Origin: Octopus sinensis
Lineage: Eukaryota
Reading direction: 5' to 3'
Length of the DNA stretch: 64,000 bases
Assembly (NCBI RefSeq): GCF_006345805.1
Contig: NC_043000.1
Location: forward strand, 150,412,001 to 150,476,000
Under the pieces are notes generated by a model. It did not search any database. It saw nothing but the letters and a program-made list of their open reading frames with translations, and was not told the origin of the DNA. A program made the translations under genes and the position numbers. The first letter of the stretch is position 1; each line of letters begins with the position of its first letter. Positions 5,964 to 59,850 of this stretch are shown piece after piece.

Positions 5964-6021
<58 letters not shown>

Positions 6022-6041
6022 ATATATATATATATATAATG

Positions 6042-6086
<45 letters not shown>

Positions 6087-6181
6087 ATGTATATGTAATA
6101 TTAATATATATATATATATATATGTATATATATGAATATATATATGTATATGTATTATATATATATATATAATATATATGT

Positions 6182-6231
<50 letters not shown>

Positions 6232-6342
6232 TAATATATATATATATATATAATGTATATATATATATATAATATTATATATATATTATATAATATATAT
6301 ATATATATTAATATGTATATATATATATATATATATATATCT

Positions 6343-6539
6343 ATATAAAATATTATTAGAGACAAAACACTATTTTGCAAAACACACAGGAAAGACTTAA
6401 TCAATACTAAAATTTTAATAAATAGTCAAAAAAACTGCCAGCCCTCAGTTTTTTTGACTATTTATTAAATTTTATGTATTGATTAAGTCTTTCCTGTTGT
6501 TTTGCAAAATAGTGGTTTTGTCTCTAATAATATTTTATA
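6343..6539. repeat. Palindrome with arms of about 95 bp
   Basis: 6343-6438 is the reverse complement of 6446-6539, with few mismatches. Confidence 0.85.
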
Positions 6540-6643
6540 ATATTTTACTATAAAATTGGATTTAATCCTAAATCTGATTTTTTCCCTGTAAATTTGGATT
6601 TATTCCTAATATTTATTATTTATATATATATATATATAATATA

Positions 6644-6707
<64 letters not shown>

Positions 6708-6719
6708 TATATATATAGG

Positions 6720-7302
6720 TAGCTTTTCCTTCTTTGGTCAATAAACTTTACTTGCGAAGACCTGTTGGCAAGTGAAATCAAATCAAAATCATTTCGATGA
6801 CTGGCATCCGTGCTAGTGGGGTGCAAAGAGCACCATACGAGTGTGATCGTTGACAGAGAGGCTATTCGAGTATGATCGTTACCAGCGTCGCCTTACTGGC
6901 ACTTATGCCTGTGTTAGTAGGGTGCCAAGAACACCATCCGAGCATGATCGTTGTGATCGTTGCCAGAGCAGCCAACTGGCTTCCGTACCCGTGGTACGTA
7001 AAAGGGCACCATTCGAGCGTGATTGTTACCAATGTCGCTTCACTGGCACCTGTGCCTGTGGCACGTGTAAAAAGATTCGAGCGAGGTCATTGTCAGTACT
7101 GCCTGACTGGCCCCCATGCAGGTGGCATGTAAAAAGCACCCACTACACTCACGGAGTGGTTGGCGTTAGGAAGGGCATCCAGCTGTAGAAACTCTGCCAG
7201 ATCAAGACTGGAGCCTGGTGCAGCCATCTGGTTGCCAGCCCTCAGTCAAAACCGTCCAACCCATGCTAGCATGGAAAACGGACGTTAAATGATGATGATG
7301 AT
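6720..7302 (+). mobile_element. RTE LINE 3' end (variant subfamily)
   Basis: Same core and (GAT)n tail. Confidence 0.8.
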
Positions 7303-7338
7303 AGGTAATTAACTTGCTTATAAACTTGCTATACTTAC

Positions 7339-7393
7339 AGGATATGCTCTTTCTGTGACAAGCTCATGCAAACGGTCTTCATTTTTCTTGATG
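7339..7393 (-). CDS. MRPL45: MRPL45 coding exon 6 (D-IKKNEDRLHELVTERAYP)
   Basis: Acceptor TTCTTTTAACTAAG, donor CCT|GTAAGT, 55 nt, phase 2-0. Confidence 0.9.
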
Positions 7394-7525
7394 CTTAGTT
7401 AAAAGAAAGAAAATAAAACAAAATATTAGTACTGATATATATATATATATAGTATATATAGTATATATATATATATATATATTATATATATTATAAAATA
7501 TATATATATTATATATATATATATA

Positions 7526-7585
<60 letters not shown>

Positions 7586-7604
7586 TATATATAATATATA
7601 TATA

Positions 7605-7635
<31 letters not shown>

Positions 7636-7643
7636 GTAGTATA

Positions 7644-7677
<34 letters not shown>

Positions 7678-7908
7678 TATGGTAGATAGATATATATATA
7701 TATATATAGTATATAATATAGATATATATATATAGTATTATTATATATATTATATATATTATATATATATAATATATAATATATATATATATTATATATA
7801 TATATATATAATAATATATATAGATATATATATATATATAATATATATATATATATATAGATAGATATATATATATATATAGTATATATATATATATATT
7901 ATATATTA

Positions 7909-7961
<53 letters not shown>

Positions 7962-10900
7962 CTATTCTTATATATAGTATATATATATATATAAGATAGT
8001 ATATATATATATATATATAATATATATAGTCTATATATATATATAGTATATATATATATATAATATATAGTATAGTATATTATACATATACACTTGTGAA
8101 GACCTGTTGAGGCAAGTGTGTGACACTTGTGAAGACCTGTTGAGCAGAGGCAAGTGTGTGACACTTGTGGAGACCTGTTGAGGCAAGTGTGTGACCGCGC
8201 GTGACACTTGTGAGACCTGTTGAGCAAGTGAAATCAAACCAAATCAAAATAGAATGAACATCAATGAATTTGTATCTTTGTGGTTCCAGTACCGGTGGCA
8301 CACAAGAAAACCATCCGATCGTGGCCGTTCGCCAGCCACATCTGGCACCTGTGTCGGTGGCACATAAAGACACCATCCGAAGACCCGGCGAAGTAGACAG
8401 TCCACCTATGCATACCTCCCTTCTTGTGACACTTGTGAAGACCTGTTGAGGCAAGTGAAAATCAAAATCAAAATCAAACCAAATCAAAATAGATGAATAT
8501 CAATGGAATTTGTATCTTTGTGGTTCCAGTACCGGTGGCACACAAGAAAACCATCCGAACGTGGCCGTCGACTGGCCTCCATGCTGTGGGCACAACAAAC
8601 ACCATCTGATCGTGGCCGTTCGCCAGCCTCACCTGGCACCTGTGTCGGTGGCACATAAAAACACCATCCAAAGACCCTGCGACGTAGTCAGTCCACCTGT
8701 GCATACCTTCCCTCTTATGACACTTGTGAAGACCTGTTGAGGCAGAGGCAAGTGTGTGACACTTGTGAAGACCTGTTGAGGCAGAGGCAAGTGTGTGACA
8801 CTTGTGGAGACCTGTTGAGGCAAGTGTGTTGACACGCGTGACACTTGTGAAGACCTGTTGAGGCAAGTGAAATCAAACCAAATCAAAATAGATGAACATC
8901 AATGAATTTGTATCTTTGTGGTTCCAGTACCGGTGGCACACCAGAAAACCATCCGATCGTGGCCGTTCGCCAGCCACATCTGGCACCTGTGTCGGTGGCA
9001 CATAAGACACCATCCGAAGACCCGGCGAAGTAGACAGTCCACCTATGCATACCTCCCTTCTTGTGACACTTGTGAAGACCTGTTGAGGCAAGTGAAAATC
9101 AAATCAAATCAAATCAAAATCAAAACAAATCAAAATAGATGAACATAAATGGAATTGTATCTTTGTGGTACCATTCCGGTGGCACACAAGAAAATCATCC
9201 GAACGTGGCCGTAGCCAGTACCGCATAGACTGGCCTCCGTGCTTTGGGGACGTAACAAACACCATCCGATCGTGGCCGTCCGCCAGCCTCATCTGGCACC
9301 TGTGTCGGTGGCACATAAAACCCATCCGAGCGTTGCCGTCTGCCAGCCTCGTCTGGCACCTGTGTCGGTGGCACATAAAAACACATCCGAGCGTGGCCGT
9401 TCGCCAGCCTCGTCTGGCACCTGTGTCGGTGGCACATAAAATCACCCACTACACTCTCGGAGTGGTTGGCGTTAGGAAGGGCATCCAGCTGTAGAAACAC
9501 TGCCAGATCTGACTGGCCTGGTGCAGCCTTCGGGCTCCCCAGACCCCAGTTGAACCGTCCAACCCATGCTAGCATGGAAAACGGACGCTAAATGATGATG
9601 ATGATGATGATGATGATGATATATATATATATATATATATGTATGTATATGTATTTATAAAGTGAGATAGGGATTATGAGTGTAACCCACTATGGGATAT
9701 CAGTTATCCAATATACTGCTGGTGAAGTACCCAAAAGGCAAATACATAAATGCTTATGATTGCAATGCAATAAATTCATTTATTGTATTAGATGGGCGAA
9801 GGTAAAATGTTTTACCTCATATACACACATATATAAGTTTAAGTGAATATATTGATTTCTTTTCAATAGTAGCAGACATATTAAGCAGAACAATGCTTGG
9901 TTTGTGAAGGAGTTCTCATTTTGTATTATAGCACTGTCTATTTTATTTCCCAAAGTTTCTAATATTGCTTTTTCTGACTTTCAGGGAACCATTATCACAT
10001 ATTATCATATACTTTCCATTTTCAAAGTACACAAATACTAAACTTGAATAAAATGTTCAATAGTTTTTTTTTTCTTTTTATTTGCTTTCAATAAATGTTC
10101 ATTCAAGCATTATAATCTAAAATTTTCCAAAAGTATCCAAAGAAAATTACCAACAAGAGACCATACTTTTTAAATGAAAATCTAATGAATGTGGTTATTT
10201 AAAAAAAAAAAAAATATTAGCTACATCTTTTCTATATTTCTAAGAAATTCATGTAAAATACATTTTCAATGGTTTGGTTTTCATTTGTTCTCATGTACCA
10301 TGTATGTATACACACACACACACATACAGGGTGGAGCAGAGAGGATGGATGTTTTTGAAATGGCTATTGCTCAACAATTGTGGGAGGGATGTATGTCTGA
10401 CAGGTACCATTTGGTCTGTGATGTCTTAACATTTATTTTTCTTTTCAGATGAAACCATGGCGCTGTGGATGATAGAGCATTGTGTGTTTGCCTATGACAG
10501 TTACATGAAGAATAATGAGTCTGTCACAGCAGTTCAGAGTGAGTTTTGGTGTCACTTCAACATTCACCGACATCAGGCTGTTCCCACCTGTAACACAATC
10601 TTATATTAGGTGAATGCACTTTGTACACAAGGTACACTACTAATGAATAGGAGACCGATGGGGGCACCGTGAATGGTATGGACCCCGGAAAATGTGGAAT
10701 GCGTCAGACAAGCTTTGATACAGAGTCCAAACTGCTCTGCTTGGAAGCATTCCACTGAACCTGGCATCAGTAATCTATCAGCAAGGCATATTTTGCATGA
10801 AGACCTGTATTTCCACCCTTACAAACTGGTCATTGAGCAACAGTTGAAACCATGGGATTATGCACAGTGGCTTAACTTTGCATGTCAGATGGGAGCAATT

Positions 10901-13900
10901 TTTGAGACAAATGACAACCTCATTTTGTTAATGAGAGACGAAGCTCATTTTCATCTCAATGGCATGGTGAATCAACAGAACTGTCATTATTGGGCTCTTG
11001 ATAATCTGAGAGAACTGCACAGCCCATAGTGACGGTCTGGTGTGCTGTTGGAAAAGCTGCCATCATTGGACCTTACATTTTTGTAGACAATATTGGAAAT
11101 GCTGTTACTGTGAACTCTGAGTGTAACATTGAGATGATAAACAACTTGACGAAAATGAATGCCCATTCGACAAGTGTGGCTTCAGCAGGATGGAGCGACG
11201 GTCCACACAGCCAGGGCATCAATGGATGTTCTTCACCCTCTCTTCGGTGACCACCTCATTTCCGGGTTTACTGATATTCCTTCCCCCAAGGTCCCCCAAA
11301 GAAAGAATTACAAAGAAACTAAAGAAAATATAAAAAAACAACAACAAAAATCCAGGTTTGAATAAACAAGTTTCACTTACTCTTGTAATAGTGTCTGAGC
11401 TTCAACAACAATATCTTGTGCCTGTTGAGAAAAATCTTTTACATCAAATTCTTCCAAATATTTCTTGATTTTCCGTAAATCTAAAAACGATTTTCCTTTT
11501 TTCTCAAGTCCACTAAACCTTTGCTTTGCACCCTGAAATGAAAAATTCTACATATAGTAATGGTTTCAATCAAAAACAAATTGAACACTTCTAACCCTTT
11601 CATTTACCATATTTCTGATGAAAGAAACTGCCTTTTGTTTTAATTAATTTAGAAAATGAAAAATGGCAGGCATTGAAACAATGATGATTAAAGGAAAAGT
11701 CATTTCTCTAGAATCAAGAAGATTTGTTAATAACAATCAGAGATCACTAATCAATACAATCTTATTATTTTAATCTTAGACTGAAACTGATAAATTTGAA
11801 CAATTGGGTAAAATTGAATTTTCAGTTGAAAATAAATACAGCAGTACCTGATAACCAGAATTTTTGAAACAATTACATTTGACCTAATTTTTACACTGAT
11901 GATTGGAAAGTTATCACCATCAGAAATTTGCATGTCTTTCTCCACAGTGGCTGTGTGGTAAGTAGCTTGCTAACCAACCACATGGTTCCGGGTTCAGTCC
12001 CACTGCATGGCACCTTTGGCAAGTGTCTTCTGCTATAGCCCCGGGCCGACCAATGCCTTGTGAGTGGATTTGGTAGACGGAAACTGAAAGAAGCCTGTCG
12101 TATATATATGATTCCATAGGTGCAGGCACGACTGTATGATTAAAAGGCAGCGAGCTGGCAGAAACGTTAGCACGTTACGTTGTGAGTTCAAATTCCGCCG
12201 AGGTCGACTTTGCCTTTCATCCTTTCGGGGTCGATAAATTAAGTACCAGTTACGCACTGGGGTCGATGTAATCGACTTAATACCTATGTCTGTCCTTGTT
12301 TGTCCCCTTGTGGGTAATAAAGAAATATGTATGATTAAGAAGCTTGCTTTCCAACCATATCATTCCAGTTACAGTTCCACTGCATGATACCTTCATAGTT
12401 CCAAACCAACCAAAGCCTTGTGCGTAGATTTGGTAAAGGGAAACTGAAGAAGCCTGTCGTATTTGTAGTGACGTCATTTTCCAGTGTGCGCACACGCAAC
12501 GTCATTCTTCAGTGTGTGTGTGCGGAACGTCATTCTTCAGTGTGCGTGTGCGGGGCTGGAGCCTTCTGGAAAGGCCTAAGGAAGTTCTCTCATGCACATG
12601 CGCGAGAGACTGGGGAAGAAAATTCTATCGCGTTCCTTGTTAGCGTCGTTGACTTGAGACATGGCTATTGAAGAGAAAGGACGTATTAAACGTGTGATCA
12701 GCCATTCTCCTGTCCCAGACACTTAGAATTTGACCTGCTCTGTTGCTGCTGAATTTGTTGTAAGAATCTTACAAATGTTAAAATTCAGCCTTGCTATATC
12801 GAACCAAATGGATACCAATATATCAACATACTTCTTTTGTAAATAAGAAATAAAGAGAATATATATTTTTAAGGTTGCGTTCTTGTTCCTGACTGGTAGA
12901 TTCTGGAAATTAAAAGAAAGGAAATTGGTTGCACCCGAACAGTGTAAAGAATTAACCAGTTCCATTGCATATTTATGTATGTCTGTGGGAACGTGTGTAT
13001 GTGTGACTTGGTGTTGCCTTGTCTTGACATTGCATGATACATGTAAACGAGTGTCACCATCATATAGCGGTGTCCTTCATTTCCAATCTTCTGTAAAATA
13101 ACATGTCCGACCATTGAGTAAAATTACCTTACTTGGAAATAGGTGAGGGTTGGCAATAGGAAGGCCATCCAACCATAGAAAATCTGCTTCAACAAATTCT
13201 GTCCCCATAAGGATAAAAGGTAAAGTTGATCTTGGTGGGATCTGAACTCACAACGTAAAGAGTTGGAAGAAATACTGTAAAGCATTCTGGCCAACATGCT
13301 AATGATTGGAAATTGTATAGATTTCCTTTTTGAGTAAGCATTTCACATCTGAATGCTCATTTTAACATCAAACGATTGCCTAAAAAGCAAGCACATTATC
13401 TAAAAAGTATGGAAACAGTCTAAAAAGCAGTCTATTTTTCAGCTGGGCATGAGACAAGATGCATTGCTTTTAAGATAAGAGTATGATACCAGAACCTGTC
13501 TTAGAATTAATCAACTTTAAATCTCTCGGTATTAGACTATGTTACTAGTTCTGTCAGCTGTATCGATTTGATTACATTTGTAATAATATAACAGGAATTA
13601 TTCATTAGTCACTGTGTATGGATTTAGTACTTAAATTTATTGGCTTCCCAGATCCCCGGTCGAATCGTCCAACCCATGCTAGCATGGAGAACGGACGTTA
13701 AACGATGATGATGATGATGATTACACAGTTTTTAAAATTTTCCTTCAATATATGTAATATATATATCATCATCATTATTGTTTCAACATCTATTTTTCCA
13801 AGCTTGCATGGGCTGAACACAATTTGTTGAGGTGAATTTTTATAACCAGATGCCCTTCCAGTCACCAACCCTCAACTGCTTCAAGTAAGGTAATATTTCC

Positions 13901-45544: not shown

Positions 45545-47415
45545 CCATCCATCATCGCAGATAAAAAATAAATAATTTCCTGCCTGCTTTTTTTTACGTA
45601 AATCAGAAACGATTTCGTTCCGGCATTCGACAGACGGGAGGAAGCGAAACTCCTTTTTCCTCCTTTAAAAAAAACTCACCACATTTCTTTCAATATCTGC
45701 TGTTTTCTCTGCTAACAGACGAAGCAACAAACTCTACAGTAACCAGGTATTATCACCATTACCCTATTCCTATTAATTTTTATTTCAAACCATTATGTTT
45801 TTCCCATCCTTTTCCACACAAAATGCCAACCGAGTCTTGTCATTTTTTTCCTCTCTTTAGAAAGGGATTTCGACATTTCCCGTTCGTCCACTTTTGCCAG
45901 CCGCCATTTACTCTCGTTTTTCATAACGTACATACATATATATATTTTACCAGTATTTTTCCTCTGTAAATTTGTAAAAACCCGTACACTTAATTGCTTG
46001 AGAACTTTACCCATTTGCAATCTGTAGCTTCTTTGTCCAAATTTTTTTGCAGTTTCACTGGATTTTATGCCCGTTTTTATTCCGCACATTTCTGAGAGAG
46101 TTTACTCCGTAAATCTCCCTCTTTCTGTTTTATTCGATAGTCATTGAGCAAGAAAAAACATTAGACATTATTTCAAAGTAGGTATTTATCTTGTTTTCCC
46201 GTCAATTCCAGGCGAATCGAGAGTCTTTCTTCTCTCGTCTCTCCACTTTTACCCGAATGGCCGCCTGCTGCACTGCTACACTCTGCTGCTAGTTCGAGTA
46301 ATTTAATATCGCCTTTTATTCAGGCAATTATCTGACTAATTGAAGATAAATTTCTCTTCCTACCTGTGTCTCATTTCCTTTATTAATGTCTCACGGCTGC
46401 ACCAAGACCTTTACCTTTATCCTGAATGTTCTGCCATAAACATTTTTTTTCTCCTTCACTTTTTGACACAGTTCAGACCGGATGAGACGAGAGAAAGGAA
46501 GGAAGCACGCTGTTTGAGAGACAGAAAAAGACCATAAAAAAGAAGCTAAAACCGACATAATTCCTTTATTTTAAGATTATACTGTCACTCAGTCGTTGTC
46601 ATCTTAATCTTAAATCATCAGTCGAAGTGTATCGGACTGAAATATGTCATCATTTCTGGTTTTAGCTACAGAAATTGCTGCATTTTTGTAGAAGACTGGG
46701 TTCTGATAAATGATAAGTCAGCGTGTTACAAGTTGTCCATGAAGGAACAAATCATGGGCAATCATGAATCCCACTGGCAACAAAAAACCCACCCATTTAG
46801 ACAGACTTCAAGACTTTCCTCTGTATAGAAAGGACGATGATGATCTTCACTATTCTTTCCTGTTTTTTAATTGTCACAAACTAGAAAAGAAATATCTCAC
46901 ACACGATTTGTGCAATTTCCTCTTTTGCTGCAATGGGACATTTTATTTTTAAACTGACCTATATTCAAAGCCGAGAGAGTGTCTCGAGATAACAAAAATA
47001 AATACATAAAAACCACTTGCTTCGCTTGTTCATTGTTTATTATACTATATTATATACACACCAGAAATTTTGATCGTTTCATTGGTGTTTTTCCTTATAT
47101 ACGCCTTAATTTTTTTCATGTAACTCAGAAAGTATGTTCTAGTCCACACCTTGTTTCGGTTAACCTTTTGTATATTATTTCATATTTCATTGGCACAGAA
47201 GAAGCCCCAACATTTCAGCACCAAATAAACTTTAAATTTGTACATTAATCTTATTTTAGTTTTGGTTTTGATGTTAACTTGCGAAAGTTTTAGTTTAGTT
47301 TTTGTATTTCTTTGTCAGTTTCGCTTAAATTAGTCAATCACCCATTTTTCCCCTTACTCTACGATTCACAAGATTTTTAAATCCTTCAATTTCTGTGTTA
47401 CTTGCTACCCGAAAT

Positions 47416-47589: not shown

Positions 47590-47650
47590 ATGAGTCAGAA
47601 GGCCCCAAAACCCATATTGTCAGGCCAGCGGCTGAAGACTAGAAAGAGGG
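47590..47650 (+). CDS. BZW1/2: BZW coding exon 1 ([20 protein letters not shown])
   Basis: Acceptor at 47581-47582, 7-nt UTR, then ATG; donor GT at 47651. Confidence 0.93.
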
Positions 47651-50600
47651 GTAAAGTTTGATTTTGATTCTTAAAAATGTCTAATTGTCCTTATAATTGG
47701 TTTGGCTTCTTGATAATATCTGGAAACTAATTTCCAAGATTCTGCAAGTTTCGTCATATATTCTAAGTGCTATTTTATAATTTGCCCCCTTTTTTTTTTC
47801 CTTTGCTAGATGAAAAAGAAAAATACGATCCTTCATCGTTTCGTGATGCCATTATTTTAGGCCTGAATGAGTGTTCAAATGATTTAGAGCAGGTAAGAGT
47901 TGTATTGTTTTTTTTCTATTATTATTATTGAATCAGTCTCTATCCTTTGCTTTTTATACTTCGTTCTCTCAGAATTCTTTCACTTTGGCACCTTTTCTTG
48001 TTACTTTAGTGATTTGTTTAGACGAAAGGCTTGTAAATTATAACTCCAGTTGAAAGGATAATTTTCCATATTTTTGTGCATAGAGTGGCTGTGTTGGTAA
48101 GTAGCTTGTTTACCAACCACATGGTTTCGGGTTCAGTCCCACTGCGTGGCATCTTGGTCAAGTGTCTTCTGCTATAGCCTCGGGCCGACCAAAGCCTTGT
48201 GAGTGGATTTGGTAGACGGAAACTGAAAGAAGCCCGTCGTATATATGTATGTGTGTCTGTGTCTGTCCCCTCCCAACATCGATTGACAACCGATGCTGGT
48301 GTGTTTATGTCCCCGTTACTTAGCGGTTCGGCAAAAGAGACCGATAGAATAAGTACTGGGCTTACAAAAGAATAAGACCCGGGGTCGAGTTGCTCGATTA
48401 AAGGCGGTGCTCCAGCATGGCCGCAGTCAAATGACTGAAACAAGTAAAAGAGTAAAGAGAGATATTTGGAGTTGTTATATGCAGTTAAGTATATACACAC
48501 CATGATTATTATGTTTTAAAGTGAGGAACTTCTGTGTGACTTACTGTTACATTAACTTCTTGTTTGAGATCAAATATTCCTTTATTTCAGTTGGTCTGTA
48601 GTCGCTGATATGACTTTGTGGAGTATGTAATATTACTAGTGTTTATATACATCCTATGTCATTTGTCTAGCTATTTAAGACTGATAACTTTCAGTTGTAA
48701 GCTAATTGCCTTCAGAATAAATCTTGCAATAAATTATATATTTCACTAATCTAATAATCTTAATGGCACTTTTACCTTCATATGACATCCTAAATCTTTT
48801 TGAATTTTAGCAAGAAGAAACTCATTCCTATGCTAAATTAGAACTTACACTGATATAAATTCAGTTCTACGAAAGAATACTGAAATTCCACATACTTCAA
48901 TTTAACATTCAGAACTATGTGGTAAAGTGTAGTTACTTTTTTTTATAGACTGATAATATATATAGTAGTCATATATATTTACCACATAGTTCTGAATGTG
49001 GAATTTCAGTATTCTTTTGTAGAACTGAATTTATATCAGTGTAAGTTCTAATTTAGCATAGGAATGAGTTTCTTCTTGCTAAAATTCAAAAAGATATAAG
49101 ATGTCATATGAAGGTAAAAGTGCCATTAGGATTATTAGATTAGTCTATCTATTATCAGTCTATCAGACTTTACATTGATCAGTGGCCCGGTACAATAGTT
49201 GCAGTTCTGATGATTTAAACTGGTGACTGTGACCAATTGTATAGCACTTGGTATACTATGACTCATCAAAAGTTTTTGTTCTTGCCAATCAGTTTTCTGA
49301 TGTAAAGTTGGCTGCCCTATTGTTGCATAACAAGTTTCAGATATAATTATTATTGAGCTAATTACATAGAAAAATTATTTAATTGTAAATGTTTTCTTCA
49401 TAGGTTATTAAGTATCTTGATACTGCTGGTTCACGTCTTGATTACCGTCGTTATGCTGAGGTGCTGTTTGATATCTTATTTACTGGAGGACAATTAGGTA
49501 AGTTTGTTTTATATACTTTTTTTTTATTGAAATTTATCTTGGTGTAAACCTATTCATGATGCAGTATTATGTTGGTAGTGTTTATTTTTAAAAGATACAC
49601 TCGCGGAGTGGTTGGCGTTACGAAGGGCATCCAGCTGTAGAAACACTGCCAGATCAGACTGGAGCCTGGTGCAGCCCCTGGCTTCCCAGACCCCGATCGA
49701 ACCGTCCAACCCATGCTAGCGCGGAAAACGGACATTAAACGATGATGATGATAGTTGTAATTTTGTCATCAAATTGAAGAGTGGATCCCGATTATTGGAT
49801 ATCTATAAATAAACTACACTTTACCACATAGTTCTGAATGTTAAATTGAAGTATGTGGAATTTCAGTATTCTTTTGTAGAACTGAATTTGTATCAGTGTA
49901 AGTTCTAATTTAGCATAGGAATGAGTTTCTTCTTGCTAAAATTCAAAAAGATTTAGGATGTCATATGAAGGTAAAAGTGCCATTAAGATTATTAGATTAG
50001 TGAAATATATAATTTATTGCAGTAGCCATTAATTGACTGGTTTCAATTTGGCTGGATATTGTCTACATTAAGTGCTTCAGTTATATACCATGAATGGTAA
50101 TGAAAGTATGGTACTGTTGTGTGGTTGGGCTTCTTTAGACTGTAGTTATTCATTTGATTGGTGCAGCTGTAACCAATCCTTAATGGAAATTCCATGTGTC
50201 CCTTGTAAGCACATTTACAAACATCATCATCGTTTAACATCCGCTTTCTATGCTAGCATGGGTTGGACGGTTCAACTGGAGTCTGGGAAGCCCGAAGGCT
50301 GCACCAGGTCAGTCAGATCTGGCGGTGTTTCTACAGCTGGATGCCCTTCCTAACACCAACCACTCCGTGAGTGTAGTGGGTGCTTTTTATGTTCCACCGA
50401 CACAGGTGCCAGACGAGGCTGGCGAACAGCTACGCTCGGATGGTGTTTTTTACGTGCCACCTGCACGGAGGCCAGGCGAGGCTGGCATGGCCGCGATCGG
50501 ATGGTGTTTGTTACACTTTGCAATAAATATATTGACTACCTTATATAGCTATAGATTTTTTTTTTTTGCTTTATGTTCTGGAAGAAGAGTCAGTATCCAT

Positions 50601-53600
50601 GTTTTTAGCTCTCTGAATTTGAAATTAATGCTCTTAATTCTGCTTAAACTGTTTGCTGGCCAATACCTGCAGGAAAGACACGAGCTGGGAACTCATACGG
50701 GTCATTGTTCCAGGAAGGATGGATTGGGTACAGTCATTAGTGTCAGGGTGGTGGTAGTGGACAACAAAAAAAAGAATTGAGAGTGCTGGAGTGGAGATGG
50801 TATAAAATCATCCGTCACTGAAGAGCCAGAGGCCAGTGTAGGAGCAATGGAAAAAAGGCAAAGAGGAAACAGTTGCCTCTGCAGCAGAAACTGGAGTATA
50901 TGTCAGAGTGATTTTTATGCCAGTCAGTCAAGTGGCCTTCCTCTGGATAAGATTTAGGATGACTTTGGTTGCAGCTGCATCACTGACCTACATTTGGGAA
51001 CAATGCTACATTGTGAAAGTCATCTGAGTGTTATAGAACAGGTTTTTATGGAATTATCAAGAAAAGGCTCATATCATAGGCTAATTTTTTTCTGACGATT
51101 TTCCCCACAACCTCACCACTTGTTGCAGTCCCTTATCTTTGTGATGTTTAGCCTCTGCAGATCAGCCTTCACCACTACTTTCTTGGGCCTCCTTTGTATC
51201 AGTGCACTCTTCTCTCTTGTGCACAGTATCTAATTCCTTCCTCTTATATATAGTTTTCTTTTAGTCTATTTATGTTCCAACATTCATACACATGAATTTT
51301 ATGCATCCAATAAAGCATAACCCATTTCTTTTCAGTCTTTGCATTCAAAGCCCACATTTTGCTACTCTGTAATATTTAAACTTTGTATGAGGCTTTATGA
51401 ATAATACTATCTACCCATCACTTGGGGCAAGAATCCTTCAAAATAGCTCCATGAATGTTTTCCATCTCATTTTCCCAATTACTATGATTTGGGGAAGTTG
51501 TAATAATTTTGTCTAATCTTATACATAGTCAATGAGCCTGTACTGCTGTAGTTTGCAGGCTGGTGCAAGATTTATTTTGAAGGCAATTAGAAAGAATATA
51601 GAGCAAAGCAAATGAGGAAATGAAAGCAGTTTGGCTTCCAAAAAATGTTTTTATTTCTTCGTTTGCTTTGTGTTATCTTCTGTTAATGTAATAATTCTTA
51701 CATCAAGAGTATTCACTGATATTGTCATAATTTTTAAATATATAGAGGCCGATGCCAGCGCCGCCCCGACTGGCTTCTGTGCCGGTAGCACATAAAGAGC
51801 ACCATCCGAACGTGGCCGTTGCCAGCGCCGCCTTGGCTGGCTTCCGTGCCGGTGGCACGTTAAAAGCTCCAACCGATCGTGGCCGATGCCGGGCCCCCCT
51901 GGCACCTGTGCAGGTGGCACGTAAAAAGCACCCACTACACTCGCGGAGTGGTTGGCGTTAGGAAGGGCATCCAGCTGTAGAAACTCTGCCAGTTCAGACT
52001 GGAGCCTGGTGCAGCCCCTGGCTTCCCAGACCCCGGTTGAACTGTGCTAGCGCGGAAAATGGACGTTAAACGATGATGATGATAGAAAAAGAATATTTAA
52101 AATTTTCTCCAGTATTTAGAGGGATGTGATTTTTGCAGTATAGTGTTAATACTTCACCTTTTTGTAATCTTTACTTATTTTAACTCTGGCTATTAAAATG
52201 CTCTATCTATGATTATACTTAAAGCAGTTTCTCTAAATTTTTAGTTTCTTGATAAGGAATAACCCCATTGCTTTTCAGTGGAACTGGTTAATGTTGCTGT
52301 GAGCATTGAGGCTAAAAGTTGGCATATTTTTTTCAATGTTTGTCATATAACTCACACCCACACCACTGAAATAGTTACATATTGAAGGCTGCAATCAAGT
52401 TGTTTTATTAGTTCTCAATGTCGAAGACCTCACCCAGATCACTGATTATGGCCCATGGGTGGATGTTGTTTACCTTTACTTTGCTAAAGCTTTTGATTCT
52501 GTGTCACACAAAAGACTTATGGCAAAACTCTGCAATGGGTGTGAAAGATGATCTTTTTAACTGGTTGGTGTCCTTCATTCTCAGCCGAAAAGAGGTAGCG
52601 ACTGTTCTTGGTCCCCTTTTGTTTGTTGCATATTTTAATGACATTAGATGCTAACTTAAAGAATGCCACAGTCCTGAAATATACAGATGACACCACCAAA
52701 GTGTAACTTGATAAAAAGGGAAGATCCTGAACACTATAGATCTATCTTGCAATTGGACCTGGACACACTGCAGCAATGGTTCATGGACTGGTAACACAAG
52801 CTGGCTGTGGACAAATGTAGCATCATGCATTTTGGGAGGAAAAACCTAGCACCTACATACTCCCTCCACAATAATATCAAGAAGCCTTCTTGTGAATGTG
52901 ACCTGATCATTACTGACAAGTGATTTGCACTGGACAAAAGCACATCTCTAAAATTGTCAAGAAGACCGAGGGTGTCTTGGCATCACTTGGCAAGACTTTT
53001 GTCAGCTGTTCTCTAGCTATCTTTTTAAAGTTGTATATGACTATGGTGCGGCCACGCTTGGAATTTGCATCACCAGTCTGGAACCCCTATCTTGCTCAGT
53101 ACATTGTTCTGGAAACTATACAGAGATGTGCAACCAAGCAAATATCCTCCATCAGGCATCTACCATACTCTGGATGCCTTGCTTCCCTGGACATGGATAC
53201 ATTGAAGCTCCGACGTCTGTAACTGTCTTGGTAAAAACCTACAAAATTATTAACCATCATGCCAACAACCACCTTGAGCACCATTTTGAATTCCATGTGT
53301 TAAACATGTGTAGGCATGCTTGCAAAGTTAGAAAACAGCATAGCTCCCATGACTTTTGGAAACATTTTTTCACAGTCAGTTGCTAAAGCATGGAACAAAC
53401 TACCTGTATCAGTTGTTGGCTAATGAGACATTGCAGCCTGAAATTCGCCAACACTACACCTGATATCCACCCTCCATACACATGTCTCATACACTTCGCT
53501 TTCCTGACATTTGTACATAATTCTATATATTATGCGTGCACCTTTTGATAAGTTGTAGTGCACCTGAGCACCTATTGTCAGTATTTTAACCATCTAGTTT

Positions 53601-54901
53601 ATGATGAATATTTTACTTATAATATATTTTTTAATTACAATCCCACTCTCAAGGAGTGGAGGTGGGGGACAAGAAAATGGTATAATAGTTTTAAAACTTA
53701 GAAATTAGTAACAGGTGTCCAGTTTCTGATTGAATCTTATATACATTGGTATTAAGATAAAAAAAAAACTAACAAAATTTGCTCAGGTACGGTATGTGTT
53801 TGACATTGCAGTGTCTAGTCCTATTGCTGTTCAACAAAATGGCTGTTAAAAAAAAAACTTCCATCCCTGCCTTAATTGCAACAATTATATGGTTGAAATT
53901 TCATAATTCATTTTCATTGAATTATCTTTACTAAATTGAAATTACATTTCTCTTTTTAATGTTAAGCACCTGGTGGGTTAATTGTTCAAGACACTGATCC
54001 AACTAAACCCTCTCGAGCTGATATATGTGTCTTTACTGCCGAAAAGAATGTAGAAACATTAAAGGCATTTTATGAAGTAAGTTCCATTTTGTTCATTAAT
54101 GTTATGTTTCCAATCATTATTTGTGGTTAATCTTTTGAGACAGCGTGTACATTTTTTTTTTTCATAAGTATTTAGACAAATAAATTTCGATGCTTATTAA
54201 ATACCATTCATTGATTTTGTATTTAAATTTGTTTCAGGTGTTCTTCAAGCTAATTAGACGGTACAAGTACCTTGAAAGATCTTTTGAAGATGAGTTGCAA
54301 AAAGTAAGTTGACTAAATTTTACACTTTTTGTTTATTCAGTGTGTGTGTGTACCAGTATATCCCTTTGTATCTCTTGAGCTTTAATAAATCTATTTGCTG
54401 GTATTGTGCAGAGATTAAGGCCTTTGCAAGTACATAAGTCATTGATAAGCACTTTCCCATATTCTAATTTTATTAATTTGTTAAATGTCTTCAGTTTCAC
54501 TATCACAGCCACTGGAGCACTTATGCTTGTGACTTAACTAAAACTGAAATTGAAATATTTTCCCCCTCGTTTTTCTTATCTCTGAGAATTAGGAGAGACT
54601 ACTTTCAAATTTGTTCTTATCACTTGCTTTATTTTCTTTTTAATTATTAGCCACAAACCCCAACTTTCAAAACATAACTGGTTTCAGTTTCCATTATTTT
54701 CATCTGACCTCTGGGGAACTTATTGCATTTTCAACTTCTCTGATCCTTCTTAGCTTTAGTTAATGTTTATATATATATATAAACATTGGCCTGCTCGCTT
54801 AGCCAGCGGAGTGGCGTCATTTAAAGGCTAAAGCAATGCGAAGCGCATTGTGACCAGCGATGTATAGCAACATCTGATAGCCTGGTCGGAAAAAAAATAT
54901 A

Positions 54902-54960
<59 letters not shown>

Positions 54961-57900
54961 CCATTTAGTAATGCATGTTAATCTTGTATAAAATGTGAAA
55001 GAGTATTTTATTGACTTCAATTATTTTGCAGATTCTCATTTACCTCAAAGCTTACAGTGAGGAAGAGCGCTGTAAGTTGGCTATCATCACAGGGCTGTTC
55101 TTGGCAAATGGCCTGTGCTCAGCAAAAATTCTCTCAAGCCTCTTTGAACAACATGTTGTTAAAGAAGGTATGTTGAAATAATAAACTGAACCTATTTTGT
55201 GTGATTTATTTCATGAATTTCCATTTCTAATTTTCAATTTCAATAAGAATTAGCAATCACTTTATTTGATCAGTTTTATAAAGAATTCTGAAACTTTAGG
55301 GATATTTGAATAACTTTTTTTTTTTTAATTTAAGGTTTATCATTGGAATTTTCCACTATCATGTTCCGAACATGGTTGAATGAAAAAGATATTAATAGTG
55401 TGAGTGCCGCTATGAAACGTTCTCAAATTGAAAACCGCCTTTTGGTAAGTTTCCATTCAATCCATGCTTAAATGTTTATATAATGTCTCTTTTTACTTTA
55501 ATTTGTAAACTGATACTCATACTTTTTTTTCTTTTGTCCGTGCAGGAACTATTTCCAATAAATAAACGCAGTCAGGAGGCTTTTCTCAATCATTTCCAAG
55601 AAGCTGGTCTTGGACCAGTTGCTAATTTACAAGTTAGTTGTATTTCTATCATTTCACCTTTTGATCTTGAATTTTTGATTTGTTATATATTTAAAAATCG
55701 TTTTCTTTTTTTTTAAATGTTGACTTTATTTGAAAATCTCGATTCTCCATTTCTCTTTTTTTTTTTTTTTAAGCGTGTCCAACAATCAGCCGAAGTAAAG
55801 AAAGAGTTACAGAAGGACTTGACAAGAATGATCAATGATAATGAACCCATAAAAGAGGTATTGTTAAAAATTGCTTCATTTTAAAATGTTATAAATTCAT
55901 CATAGTTTAGGTATCTTAGTATTTTTAGTAATGATAATGAACCCATAAAAGAGGTATTGTTAAAAATTGCTTCATTTTAAAATGTTATAAATTCATCATA
56001 GTTTAGGTATCTTAGTATTTTTAGTAATGATAATGAACCCATAAAAGAGGTATTGTTAAAAATTGCTTCATTTTAAAATGTTATAAATTCATCATAGTTT
56101 AGGTATCTTAGTATTTTTAGTAATGATAATGAACCCATAAAAGAGGTATTGTTAAAATTGCTTCATTTTAAAATGTTATAAATTCATCATAGTTTAGGTA
56201 TCTTAGTATTTTTAGTAATGATAATGAACCCATAAAAGAGGTATTGTTAAAAATTGCTTCATTTTAAAATGTTATAAATTCATCATAGTTTAGGTATCTT
56301 TGTATTTTTAGTTTGTCTTACTTGTAAAGCAATTTCATCTATCAGAAATTCATTTGAATTGGTGGGTGGGGTGACCACTTCTGAGTTGGCCTTTTGCAAA
56401 CATAAAATGTTAGGTAGCAGTTTGACTTATAGCATAAGCATATAATATTTCACAAGTAAAGCTTTTGTGGACTTCCCTGCTCAGTAAAAGATGATGCCCA
56501 ATAAACTTGTCAATTTTAGAGAACATTTAATTTTAGAATAAAGGTTGCTTTTCAGTCTTATGGCAGTTATGTCAATAGCCCTTAATCTGATTTTAATTTT
56601 TTTTAATACCAAGTCAGATATTGTGCAGTATTGAAAAAATAATTCTGTAACAGCAGTTTATTATTGATGTGCAGATTGTCTAAATTCATGTAAATAAGTG
56701 TGCTGTTGAATTACATTTATTTCTCACTTCTTTTGGTTATATGCTATGTAGTTTCTTAACAATAAACTAAGAAACCTGTATATAAATTTGAGTTTAGTAA
56801 ACTTTTTTTCTTTTTGTGTGTATAACTTGGGAGGTAAATTTTTTTTCTTTTATCAACATAATAGAGGAAAATACTTACACAATTTGCTCGTGGCTTAACA
56901 TATATACATGCCTAGGCACAGCATAGCTGAATGGTTAAGTTTACTTCAAAATCATGATGGCCCCAGGCTCAATACCATTGTATAGCATTTTCCTTGTCCT
57001 CAGATTAACTCGTACTTTGTGAGTAAAATTGGGGTGGTAAAAACTATAGAAGCCATTTGGATGACATCTCACTTGATTCTGCCTTTAATATTACATTGAG
57101 TACGTGTTTCTGTGTAATGCTAATTCAATGAGTTGGTAACTGGGTAGAATAAAGAACTGAATTCTCACTATCAAAGCTGAAGAGATTGTGTGTGTATATA
57201 CATATTTTTTACAGAGGAAAGCATTACCTAAATAGGTTGGTTTTTTGCCAGATATACAGACAGGCATGAGAATAAATTTGTATGCTATAAATTTTTGTCT
57301 TTGAGAATTATGTCAGGTACAATAAACTTTAAGATTGTCATTAAATGCTTGATTAAATTTGAGAAAAATCGTTTTTTTTTTGCAGATAATTGCTCATTTA
57401 AAAGAATACATGGCTAAGCACAAGCTCTCTGATCATGAAATGGTTGTCTTGGTAAGTAGATTTCTCATTAAATTCCAAATTAGCATTTTAATTGAAAACT
57501 TATGTTCTTGATAACAGCTTTGTATGTCATTTCAATTTTTTCAAATGGATTAAGTATAGACTCTTTAACTCTTAAAAAAAATAAAGGTCTCATTTGGATA
57601 TATTTCTTGCTTATAGTCTGTATAAAATTGTGATGGTAACAGAAAAAGATATTGCACAAATACTTTTAAAGCTTTTTGTCAGTGAACAGGTCGCGGTCTT
57701 AAAGTGACGAAAATATTTTGACAAATTAAACTTAAATGTTGAAGTGAATCAAACGGCTTTTGTGTGTTTCTTAAATGGCTTATAAACACCTTCCACGCTG
57801 CAATTGTTTTCGTTTCAGCACACGATCTCAGATCAAATCACTTGCTATGCGAGTACATCTCCGTAATTTTAAAGCTTTATTTTATGGAAAATCTATTTTA

Positions 57901-59850
57901 AAGTTAAATGGTAAATATTCATAAATACTATGAATTGCCTAAAGCGTTTCTCTTACAATGCATTGGAAATGAGAGATAACAATGTTAGCATTGATTTTCC
58001 AAGAACATTGAGGGAGATCACTCTGATTTCTACAGTTGGTATATGTGGACAGTATTGGAATCATTTTCATTGGTTTGTAAGACTTTCTCTTGTGCTGCTA
58101 AATTGGTTTGTTCCAACAGTTGTCTGAACAAAACTGGGCAGTCTTTTAACTCAGTTTCTGTTTTTGTAGTATGGCTGATGTATTATTCTGACAGCTTCAG
58201 TATTCAGGAAACAACAAAAACTGGAGTTTATCTACAATAAATCCTTTGACATAGCCTCAAGACTGATTAAAAGTAGATTACAGACAACTAAACCAAATGG
58301 TTCTGTAATTGAGTGTCCTGAAAGGTCAGGTCCTATGCCAGAGTGAATTTTCTACTGCATCTGACATTGAGGTGTTTAATAAGGTTTTTCGTGCTTGTAT
58401 TCACCCTGTAGGATTGATGCCATTAACATTATTCACGAACTGTTGCAAGTTGATGGCTGCAGAAGAAATGTGGAGTGTGGGGAGACATTCCAGAGTTGGA
58501 AGCATTGGGTGGGGGTAGGGGATGGCAAGTGAGTCAGGAGTGCTGTGTGTTGCAATGGAACAAAACCTACTAGCTTTGAGAAGAGGCTGCCATAATAGCA
58601 CTTAAGTCAGACAAGACAGCAAGAGGTTGGAGTATATTTTCAAGTGACGTAGTGTCAAGTGGCTTTTATTTTTTTTTTTTATAGATGTAATCTGATGTTG
58701 TGCCATGAGTGCTTGTACAGCGTTAGTAGTTGCTTGATGGGAACTAATATATTTTCTAGCATTAAGATGTAGTCTTCACTATGTTGAGGATGTGTATTCA
58801 CCAGGAAAACTCACCTCAATAATGGTTATGTCTGGCATTTGAAGTGAAACATCATCATCATTTAGTGTCCGCTTTCCATGCTAGCATGGGTTGGACGGTT
58901 CAACTGGGGTCTGTGAAGCCAGAAGGCTGCACCAGGCCCAGTCTGATCTGACAGTGTTTCTACGGCTGGATGCCCTTTGTAACGCCAACCACTCCGTGAG
59001 TGTAGTGGGTGCTTTTTACGTGCCACCCGCACAGGAGCCAGACAGTTTTATATAAATTTGAAGTTGAGAATTTTGTTAGCAAATATGTTTCTAATGTATT
59101 AAGGGTTATTGAGGATTCACCTGTTGCAGATTTTAAGTCTATGAATGGGTTTCAAGATATTCTTTTTTTCATTAGGTTTGGAATACAGTAATGGGAACTG
59201 TTGAATGGAACAAAAAGGAAGAACTCGTAGCAGAGCAAGCTCTCAAGCATTTGCGTAATTACTGTCTTCTGTTTACTGCTGTAGCAAAAACTGAAAAATC
59301 GGAGCTCAACCTCATGGTGAGAATCCAAGAATACTGCTACGACAATATCAATTTTATGAAGGTGTTTCAAAAAATTATAATACTCTTTTATAAATGTAAG
59401 CATTTTCTTTTTACTCATATCATTGTTGTGAAAATTGTGAATTTTTTTGCTAATTCTTACTCTAATGCTTTCATGTGGGGAGAGGCCAACAAGTGCACTT
59501 ATGGGTTTCTTTCTGTAAAAAATGGCCTTTGGTGAGGGATGGGCACTGAATAAGATTTTGTTAGCAAGTGATTGTATAGACCGTTTGATTGATATACAAT
59601 TCAATTTTTATTTTTTCTTAAGCTGAGGTCCTGTCTGAAGATGTGGTCCTAAAGTGGTATCGTGATAGCCCTTCTTCAAAAGGAAAAGGTATCTTTGTTA
59701 GCCAAATGAAGAAATTTGTGGAATGGCTAAAGAGTGCTGAAGAAGGTAAAAGAAATTTTCTTTTGTCTATTTCAATTTAAATTCTCTTAAAAAAAAATTT
59801 TTTTCATATTTTATCTCTTGTTTTTAATTTCTCTTTCAGAATCTGATTAG
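47590..59850 (+). CDS. BZW1/2: Basic leucine zipper and W2 domain protein / eIF5-mimic protein (5MP, krasavietz-like); complete, 13 coding exons, 416 aa
   Basis: Exons 47590-47650, 47810-47892, 49404-49497, 53967-54076, 54238-54303, 55032-55167, 55335-55444, 55546-55632, 55774-55857, 57386-57451, 59176-59395, 59623-59745 and 59840-59850 total 1251 nt in one frame, all GT-AG. Motifs [41 protein letters not shown] and [14 protein letters not shown]. Likely co-ortholog of vertebrate BZW1 and BZW2. Confidence 0.96.
47810..47892 (+). CDS. BZW1/2: BZW coding exon 2 ([13 protein letters not shown]...LEQ)
   Basis: AG/GT flanks, 83 nt, in frame. Confidence 0.95.
48725..50021. repeat. Triple inverted-repeat system: A 48725-48934, B 48978-49144, C 49812-50021
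   Basis: C is the reverse complement of A over 210 bp with 2 differences by eye. B is a shorter reverse complement with a 15-nt deletion. Confidence 0.92.
49404..49497 (+). CDS. BZW1/2: BZW coding exon 3 ([31 protein letters not shown])
   Basis: AG/GT flanks, 94 nt. Confidence 0.95.
52420..53570 (+). pseudogene. CR1-clade LINE reverse transcriptase remnant with 3' UTR
   Basis: [59 protein letters not shown]. The 3' end is related to 25070-25410. Confidence 0.85.
53967..54076 (+). CDS. BZW1/2: BZW coding exon 4 (APGG...TLKAFYE)
   Basis: AG/GT flanks, 110 nt. Confidence 0.93.
54238..54303 (+). CDS. BZW1/2: BZW coding exon 5 ([22 protein letters not shown])
   Basis: AG/GT flanks, 66 nt. Confidence 0.95.
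55032..55167 (+). CDS. BZW1/2: BZW coding exon 6 (ILIYLKAY...QHVVKE)
   Basis: AG/GT flanks, 136 nt. Confidence 0.94.
55335..55444 (+). CDS. BZW1/2: BZW coding exon 7 (GLSLEF...[10 protein letters not shown]...NRLL)
   Basis: AG/GT flanks, 110 nt. Confidence 0.94.
55546..55632 (+). CDS. BZW1/2: BZW coding exon 8 ([10 protein letters not shown]...VANLQ)
   Basis: AG/GT flanks, 87 nt. Confidence 0.93.
55774..55857 (+). CDS. BZW1/2: BZW coding exon 9 ([14 protein letters not shown]...NEPIKE)
   Basis: AG/GT flanks, 84 nt. Its 3' end is the first unit of a 96-bp tandem repeat. Confidence 0.93.
55834..56312 (+). repeat. Five tandem copies of a 96-bp unit spanning the BZW exon 9/intron 9 junction
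   Basis: Units start at 55834, 55930, 56026, 56122 and 56217; nearly identical. Confidence 0.95.
57386..57451 (+). CDS. BZW1/2: BZW coding exon 10 ([22 protein letters not shown])
   Basis: AG/GT flanks, 66 nt. Confidence 0.9.
59176..59395 (+). CDS. BZW1/2: BZW coding exon 11 ([26 protein letters not shown]...LFYK), W2 domain
   Basis: AG/GT flanks, 220 nt; overlaps ORF-track 59191-59535. Confidence 0.97.
59623..59745 (+). CDS. BZW1/2: BZW coding exon 12 ([13 protein letters not shown]...[10 protein letters not shown]), aromatic/acidic boxes
   Basis: AG/GT flanks, 123 nt. Confidence 0.96.
59840..59850 (+). CDS. BZW1/2: BZW terminal coding exon (ESD-stop)
   Basis: Acceptor TTTCTCTTTCAG, then AA TCT GAT TAG. 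Confidence 0.85.

Follow-up and report, generated by a model that had tools for sequence, protein, structure and literature searches.

In the Octopus sinensis gene for BZW, the eIF5-mimic protein (5MP), a 94-nt coding exon is flanked by three related intronic sequences, arms A and B upstream and arm C downstream, whose orientations allow alternative pairings in the transcript. The gene lies on the + strand of the 64,000-nt stretch analysed here, referred to as the window (100% identical to assembly GCA_006345805.1, CM016862.1, from PacBio reads; PMC10700109). Its coding region spans 47590–59850 and comprises 13 coding exons encoding 416 amino acids. We located exons by tblastn with a BZW guide and then fitted splice sites by hand, placing coding exons 1–7 at 47590–47650, 47810–47892, 49404–49497, 53967–54076, 54238–54303, 55032–55167 and 55335–55444, and coding exons 8–13 at 55546–55632, 55774–55857, 57386–57451, 59176–59395, 59623–59745 and 59840–59850. 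AG and GT stand at every exon border, and the spliced translation is identical to O. sinensis XP_029634513.1 and 99% identical to O. bimaculoides eIF5-mimic protein 2 (E = 2.9e-268), with the Pfam domains HEAT_5MP1_2 (PF25504) and W2 (PF02020). A transcript contig from O. bimaculoides (L002) reproduces all of the junctions and adds a 5′ untranslated region (5′UTR) exon near 45640–45746. The 94-nt exon (49404–49497, + strand), labelled coding exon 3 in an earlier note on this DNA, keeps that rank in coding order but is exon 4 of the transcript because of the 5′UTR exon upstream. Its splice sites are strong and consensus (tttcttcatag|G and TAG|gtaagt), and its sequence carries 0 substitutions between O. 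sinensis and O. vulgaris. Skipping the exon leads to an early stop, as the earlier note had read: 47892 joined to 53967 gives ...GAG CAG / CAC CTG GTG GGT TAA, or ...EQHLVG-stop.

Three arms around a frameshifting exon

Arm A (48725–48939) is a reverse-complement copy of arm C (49807–50021), and arm B (48978–49144) is a direct copy of C positions 49820–50001 with its partner in A at 48745–48926; all three coordinates are given on the + strand. A repeat search pairs A with C over 215 nt at 98% complementarity and 867 nt apart, and A with B in two blocks (48745–48893 with 48996–49144, 149 nt, 97%; 48892–48926 with 48978–49012, 35 nt, 89%). Base-by-base inspection agrees with the earlier description of a 210-nt A:C complementarity broken by two wobbles: the mismatches are T48856/G49890 and G48871/T49875, U-G or G-U in the sense (+) RNA, leaving 208/210 identity. 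Arm B differs from C by a 15-nt deletion between ATGT repeats and by 2 private substitutions that both O. sinensis and O. vulgaris carry; at its outer end it stops about 20 nt short of A and C. The pairing geometry that had been proposed holds, with B as a second partner of A and the A:B and A:C pairings mutually exclusive. The A:C pairing would loop out the exon, as also proposed, with A ending 464 nt upstream of the 3′ splice site, C starting 309 nt downstream of the 5′ splice site and the 94-nt exon lying between B and C.

The arms were said to match no other repeat in the window, and we find no further copy in its 64 kb. Beyond A, B and C there is likewise none in the O. vulgaris locus, and the O. 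bimaculoides locus holds a single copy. For repeats of such length a chance explanation is not an issue. All details of the earlier description that could be checked are correct. As DNA, A and C form inverted repeats and B and C direct repeats flanking exon 3, and recombination between them would invert or delete this exon, respectively.

Long inverted repeats are found elsewhere in the window, which contains 36 pairs of at least 100 nt lying within 6 kb of each other. Some of the pairs are longer than A:C (for example 15197–15578/18232–18613, 382 nt, 96%; 37445–37716/38069–38340, 272 nt, 97%), and the 36 are probably intergenic or located within introns of Tim44, the neighbouring gene.

A lineage-specific insertion in intron 2

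We compared the orthologous loci of O. bimaculoides (L001), Argonauta hians (L003) and O. vulgaris (L005, assembly GCA_951406725.2), which all have the same gene neighbours, Tim44 upstream and a leucine-rich repeat (LRR) gene downstream. The introns of O. sinensis and O. bimaculoides are collinear at about 88–93% identity except for discrete blocks. One such block is 48704–49150, a 447-nt segment of intron 2 made up of a short piece termed X, arm A, a spacer, arm B and filler. O. bimaculoides has an empty site here: window positions 48483–48704 correspond to L001 10519–10736 and 49149–49597 to L001 10734–11201, and the joined O. sinensis flanks align cleanly to ...GTAAACT|ATTATCAGTCTATCAG. Arm C, by contrast with A and B, has its counterpart at the orthologous position of O. 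bimaculoides intron 3 (L001 11255–11470), with continuous flanks on both sides and an identity of 93–94% that equals that of the flanking intron. Arm C is thus the ancestral single-copy sequence, and A is the reverse complement of this donor, which lies 660–1300 nt downstream.

The orthologous intron had been suggested for alignment in other octopods, and the outcome differs among them. O. vulgaris has the same arrangement (L005 11145–11354 for A, 11419–11585 for B and 12253–12462 for C), with its own species-specific substitutions and a 21-nt duplication in the spacer; A and B are absent from the orthologous site in O. bimaculoides, and arm copies are undetectable in the Argonauta locus, where only the exons are common with O. 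sinensis and the introns are not alignable. A conserved RNA structure should be present across relatives, and this one occurs in O. sinensis and O. vulgaris only. Its presence in both bears directly on whether the structure arose in assembly, for instance from a chimeric palindromic long read. Palindromic artefacts are known in long-read assemblies, but the same structure stands in an assembly of a different species made by a different laboratory with a different read technology (Oxford Nanopore Technologies (ONT) versus PacBio; PMC10700109) and carries changes of its own there. We therefore rejected the artefact explanation, one of the outcomes that the earlier note had named as a refutation, as vanishingly improbable.

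By sequence comparison, we show that the 447 nt entered BZW intron 2 in the ancestor shared by O. sinensis and O. vulgaris, once their lineage had separated from that of O. bimaculoides. Arm copies differ among themselves by 1.0–3.3%, whereas the divergence of A and B from O. bimaculoides C is 5–8%; the duplication is therefore later than that split. The alternative of a loss in O. bimaculoides is ruled out, as A and B are 97–99% identical to O. sinensis C and 92–94% identical to O. bimaculoides C. Published splits lie at about 2.5 million years ago (Mya) for O. sinensis and O. vulgaris and about 34 Mya for their clade and O. bimaculoides (PMC10700109). The insertion falls between these two splits and, judged by divergence, not long before the younger one. 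We abandoned absolute dating and claim only the relative order, because intron divergence between O. sinensis and O. vulgaris stands to that between O. sinensis and O. bimaculoides at about 1:3, a misfit to the published 2.5 and 34 Mya.

Templated pieces joined at microhomologies

Apart from the arms, the insertion contains further sequence that can be traced to nearby templates. At its left end, piece X (48702–48728, + strand, 27 nt) is the reverse complement of intron-3 positions 51564–51590 (+ strand), 1.5 kb downstream of C. The match is 26/27 within the window and 27/27 to the reverse complement of O. bimaculoides L001 12695–12721 (E = 1.8e-7), and in O. vulgaris piece X and its donor form an exact reverse-complement pair (L005 11122–11148 and 13994–14020). 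Piece X shares the microhomology CTA with the left flank and TGCA with arm A. Homology of arm A to the O. bimaculoides C region extends inward to about 48952 (TTTTATAGA), into the spacer of the A–B palindrome (48940–48977, + strand). Within this spacer, 13 nt at 48945–48957 (ATAGACTGATAAT) match the insertion's right flank at 49151–49163 in reverse complement, joined through ATAGA; the O. vulgaris spacer contains its additional 21-nt segment as a tandem duplication. At the right junction lies the filler CTATCT (49145–49150, + strand), and AGTCTATC at 49142–49149, formed by the end of B together with CTATCT, duplicates the flank at 49157–49164 with an AGT microhomology to the end of B. The junction microhomologies of the insertion are thus CTA, TGCA, ATAGA and AGT, each of 3–5 nt.

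Adjoining the donor of piece X is a 40-nt imperfect hairpin (51593–51681, 78% complementary, 9-nt loop). Speculatively, it could be a fork-stalling structure relevant to template switching.

Several short templated pieces, mostly inverted, drawn from about 3 kb and joined at 3–5-nt microhomologies have the signature of replication template switching, that is, of fork stalling and template switching (FoSTeS) or microhomology-mediated break-induced replication (MMBIR). All three hallmarks of such events are found here: an empty site in the outgroup, a donor in cis with its reverse-complement copy, and discontinuous segments meeting at microhomologies. The MMBIR model describes microhomology-joined rearrangements of this type (PMC2621351), and a single template-switch event produces a perfect hairpin, while such events can also imitate compensatory changes (PMC8794818, PMC10710096). 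We consider it likely that the three-arm set of A, B and C arose through a single complex, local and templated insertion, or through a few closely spaced ones, and is neither a transposon nor a conserved RNA element. During replication or break repair, a nascent strand would have switched templates several times within about 3 kb. It may first have copied 27 nt of 51564–51590 in reverse complement as piece X, then the intron-3 C region in reverse complement as arm A, and then, again in reverse complement, 13 nt from the right flank of the insertion site itself. To form arm B, C sequence would next have been copied in direct orientation, with C itself or, after folding back, A as the template, before the strand returned to its original template.

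A foldback or miniature inverted-repeat transposable element (MITE) could also deliver a palindrome, with A and B forming the element and C representing another copy of its family. The A–B block is indeed a palindrome with a short spacer that was inserted as a unit, and octopus introns are rich in repeats. C is, however, orthologous single-copy intron sequence with continuous flanks in O. bimaculoides; A, B and C are the only arm copies in the 64-kb window and the three 30-kb loci, so that no dispersed family is seen; and the insertion holds 27 nt from a second place in intron 3 of the same gene, as well as 13 nt taken from its flank. Nor do the ends of the insertion, formed on the left by piece X and on the right by CTATCT, show terminal inverted repeats with a transposon-type target-site duplication; they have only a 2–3-nt CT(A) ambiguity in common. 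On the orthologous unique C, the absence of other copies and the templated junctions, with a donor identifiable in cis, we rejected a transposon origin as highly improbable.

A template-switch insertion, the origin we prefer, belongs to a known kind. As in described template-switch mutations and FoSTeS/MMBIR insertions (PMC8794818, PMC10710096, PMC7954356, PMC2621351), nearby sequence is copied in reverse complement, several segments come from a few kilobases, microhomologies measure 3–5 nt, an outgroup lacks the block and apparent compensatory changes are possible. The BZW insertion differs in scale and layout: short-range template switching usually makes short stems, whereas the stems here measure about 185–215 nt, and in place of a simple hairpin there is a three-way set of a hairpin and a distant partner across an exon. 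The locus also belongs to the known class of inverted repeats flanking an exon. It is a clear example of how a complex templated insertion can, in one step and without a transposon, create long and perfect RNA-pairing potential around an exon, with the donor, the empty site and the junction microhomologies all visible and O. vulgaris showing neutral decay.

Arms change at the rate of the surrounding introns

Between O. sinensis and O. vulgaris, substitutions number 6/215 in A, 2/170 in B and 3/215 in C. The total for the arms (11/600, 1.8%) does not differ from that for the rest of introns 2 and 3 (115/5333, 2.2%; range given for introns 1.9–2.9%; Fisher P = 0.76). In O. vulgaris, the A:C pairing contains 7 non-Watson–Crick pairs, 5 wobbles and 2 A-C mismatches, none of them compensated; five of the changes are transitions found only in its arm A. 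When both species are pooled, 6/8 independent differences are sense-strand wobbles, which is not significant under a null in which each transition is 50% likely to be such a wobble (P = 0.14). Because neither this pooled count nor the 2/2 in O. sinensis is significant, the wobble-only pattern in O. sinensis carries no weight. Neither covariation nor a reduced rate is seen: one double-sided change stands against 7 non-Watson–Crick pairs, in a comparison of two species that has low power.

Several observations weigh against the account of a templated insertion that has since drifted. For the remaining 20 nt of the spacer (48958–48977, ATATATAGTAGTCATATATA), a search of the window found no template. 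At 48743/50003, O. sinensis has a U-A pair and O. vulgaris a C-G pair, while the ancestral C copy has G; both arms have changed in parallel in one lineage, as selection for pairing would produce. The A:C arms of O. sinensis differ at 2 positions where about 5 would be expected from the species divergence, although this deficit is not significant (Poisson P = 0.12). The palindrome has, moreover, survived in both lineages since their split, and the O. vulgaris A:C duplex still has a predicted energy of −327 kcal/mol.

Gene conversion or a repairing template switch (PMC8794818) can explain the double change at 48743/50003 as well as selection can. Homoplasies among the arm copies, at alignment columns 109, 124 and 237, hint at gene conversion, and at columns 109 and 124 A and B share states that differ from O. 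sinensis C. We infer that the near-perfect A:C complementarity of O. sinensis reflects youth and perhaps one gene-conversion tract, not selection for pairing. A caution follows for similar loci, as near-perfect complementarity and wobble-only mismatches can reflect youth alone. The arrangement is most likely selectively neutral or slightly deleterious, and the neutral recent rearrangement that the earlier note had listed as a possible refutation is the outcome favoured by the comparative data.

Predicted RNA structures

Energies were calculated with ViennaRNA. In O. sinensis, the A–spacer–B hairpin is predicted at −262 kcal/mol and the A:C duplex at −342 kcal/mol; the O. vulgaris hairpin has the same value of −262 kcal/mol. 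In the minimum-free-energy fold of 48690–50060, A pairs with C and B folds on its own. The alternative A–B hairpin has a near-perfect stem of about 184 bp; in A, the outer 20 nt and a bulge of 15 nt stay unpaired. As B follows A by 38 nt in the transcript and C comes more than 800 nt later, A:B should form first during transcription. Once B is transcribed, the hairpin would be a strong ADAR substrate, sequester A and favour normal linear splicing. A:C, the predicted thermodynamic ground state, could invade by using the 20 outer nucleotides and the 15-nt bulge as toeholds, and looping of exon 3 might then yield a back-spliced 94-nt circle or a skipped mRNA prone to nonsense-mediated decay (NMD).

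Complementary sequence thus lies in both flanking introns near the splice sites, the configuration associated with circular RNA (circRNA) formation and exon skipping, and the predicted duplex on the transcribed (+) strand reaches the length of at least 100 bp that marks a candidate ADAR substrate. Formation of double-stranded RNA and ADAR editing are likely by-products on this folding model, in which the A–B hairpin is expected to be edited and skipped or circular products are expected to be minor. In O. vulgaris, editing is mostly intronic or in 3′UTRs and circRNAs are few, with 296 high-confidence examples in 18 tissues, a scarcity ascribed by the authors to the activity of ADAR (PMC9699675). 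Repeat pairs that promote circRNA formation in mammals are for the most part young by-products (PMC8516420). The BZW arms resemble intronic repeat pairs such as inverted Alu elements in lying in both flanking introns about 300–460 nt from the splice sites with a rival partner in the same intron, in forming a long duplex that would be an ADAR substrate, and in being young and lineage-specific as in mammals (PMC8516420). They differ in that the arms are copies of unique local intron sequence made by templated insertion, not transposon copies, and in that the exon measures only 94 nt.

Candidate functions of the arms

The earlier note had proposed a structural switch. In its fullest form, A, B and C would be an evolved kinetic RNA switch in which A:B keeps the exon and A:C loops it out, giving a frameshifted NMD isoform or a circRNA and so tuning BZW/5MP dosage, possibly under ADAR or helicase control. 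Parts of this proposal stand. The two pairings do exclude each other and the geometry does loop out the exon, skipping leads to a premature stop, both duplexes have extremely high predicted stability, and the 20-nt toehold and 15-nt bulge of A are free for invasion by C. The double-sided change at 48743/50003 and retention of the arrangement in two species also fit a switch. There is precedent in mammals, where Zhang and colleagues in 2014 reportedly found that competition between inverted repeats within and across introns sets circularisation efficiency (reviewed in PMC5814467). The predicted physical ingredients of an RNA switch are therefore present; that such a switch evolved is the part that fares poorly. 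O. bimaculoides and Argonauta have the exon and the gene without the young insertion, the arms drift at the intron rate, and the 7 non-Watson–Crick pairs of O. vulgaris are uncompensated. The exon has consensus splice sites and, at 94 nt, is short for a single-exon circle. The window is rich in long intronic inverted repeats, and O. vulgaris has few circRNAs (PMC9699675).

A skip isoform was found neither among annotated nor among assembled sequences, although the negatives are weak: the 52-amino-acid peptide of the skip isoform has no exact match in the protein collection, and the two annotated O. vulgaris isoforms differ at the C terminus only and not at exon 3. Neither a circRNA list nor an entry for BZW is present in the supplements of Zolotarov et al. 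2022. A regulatory switch, although possible, lacks support, and we consider the evolved switch very unlikely. Very unlikely, too, is a reading that joins it to the template-switch origin, in which a single accident at about the O. sinensis / O. vulgaris split made a three-arm RNA switch in one step, combining a fast A:B hairpin with toeholds and a stabler A:C duplex looping the frameshifting exon, and the clade would now set BZW/5MP dosage through unproductive splicing or circRNA under ADAR or helicase gating. If a switch were real, a regulatory RNA structure would have arisen de novo from a replication error, and O. bimaculoides would be the natural control without it.

Alternatively, the A–B hairpin itself might be the functional unit, a long-hairpin RNA locus that arose by inverted duplication of the gene's own intron and gives rise to endogenous small interfering RNAs (endo-siRNAs) or a microRNA (miRNA)-like RNA, or an ADAR-recruiting element. 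Its near-perfect stem of about 184 bp, with the same predicted energy in both species, would suit such a role, and new miRNA hairpins are documented to arise by template switching (PMC10710096). An Rfam search returned nothing for the short interspersed nuclear element (SINE)-like repeats nearby and only sub-threshold matches to miRNA-precursor models at the hairpin tip (48900–49004), which score far below the gathering thresholds (29 bits versus 100). The arm sequences do not occur in the part of the O. vulgaris miRNA supplementary tables that was consulted, a weak negative; the sole complementary target is an intron of the same gene, and the arms show no constraint. Long hairpin RNA (hpRNA) loci are sources of endo-siRNAs in Drosophila. 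Such loci are likewise long, near-perfect inverted duplications of other genomic sequence transcribed as a hairpin, but the BZW hairpin is intronic and derives from an intron of the same gene. We judge a function of the hairpin as a unit very unlikely.

With A and B present in O. sinensis and O. vulgaris and C alone in O. bimaculoides, the locus is a natural experiment on the effect of a partner arm on ADAR hyper-editing, circularisation and exon skipping in an animal that edits heavily.

Neighbouring repeats and other structural changes

Arm C is bordered by two SINE-like repeats in opposite orientation, one just upstream (49596–49765, + strand, with many copies in the loci) and an inverted one just downstream (50210–50515, − strand), both present in O. 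vulgaris and absent from O. bimaculoides. The two are complementary to one another in stretches of 66 nt (92%) and 76 nt (84%), and a third SINE-like copy at 51746–52090 pairs with 50210–50515 over 114 nt at 87%; these pairs add competing structures in intron 3. O. bimaculoides also lacks a repeat insertion at 48085–48459 in intron 2, which has relatives upstream of the gene in both O. sinensis and O. vulgaris.

Further downstream, 55834–56312 is a tandem array of 5.0 copies of a 96-bp unit at 99% identity, in which the unit opens with the final 24 nt of coding exon 9 of BZW and the GT donor of that exon. If used, a downstream copy of this donor would lead to an in-frame TAA. O. vulgaris has 4.0 copies (L005 18429–18812), and the scanned O. 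bimaculoides region showed no tandem array. The array is a second lineage-specific structural mutation in BZW. Elsewhere in intron 3, open reading frame fragments at 52375–53400 (+ strand) look reverse-transcriptase-like by eye, which suggests a decayed element of the long interspersed nuclear element (LINE) type; it is older than the split from O. bimaculoides because the region aligns to that species. Far upstream of BZW, 6001–8000 is very AT-rich (GC 0.22) and contains repeated ATATATAGTATATATATATA-type units.

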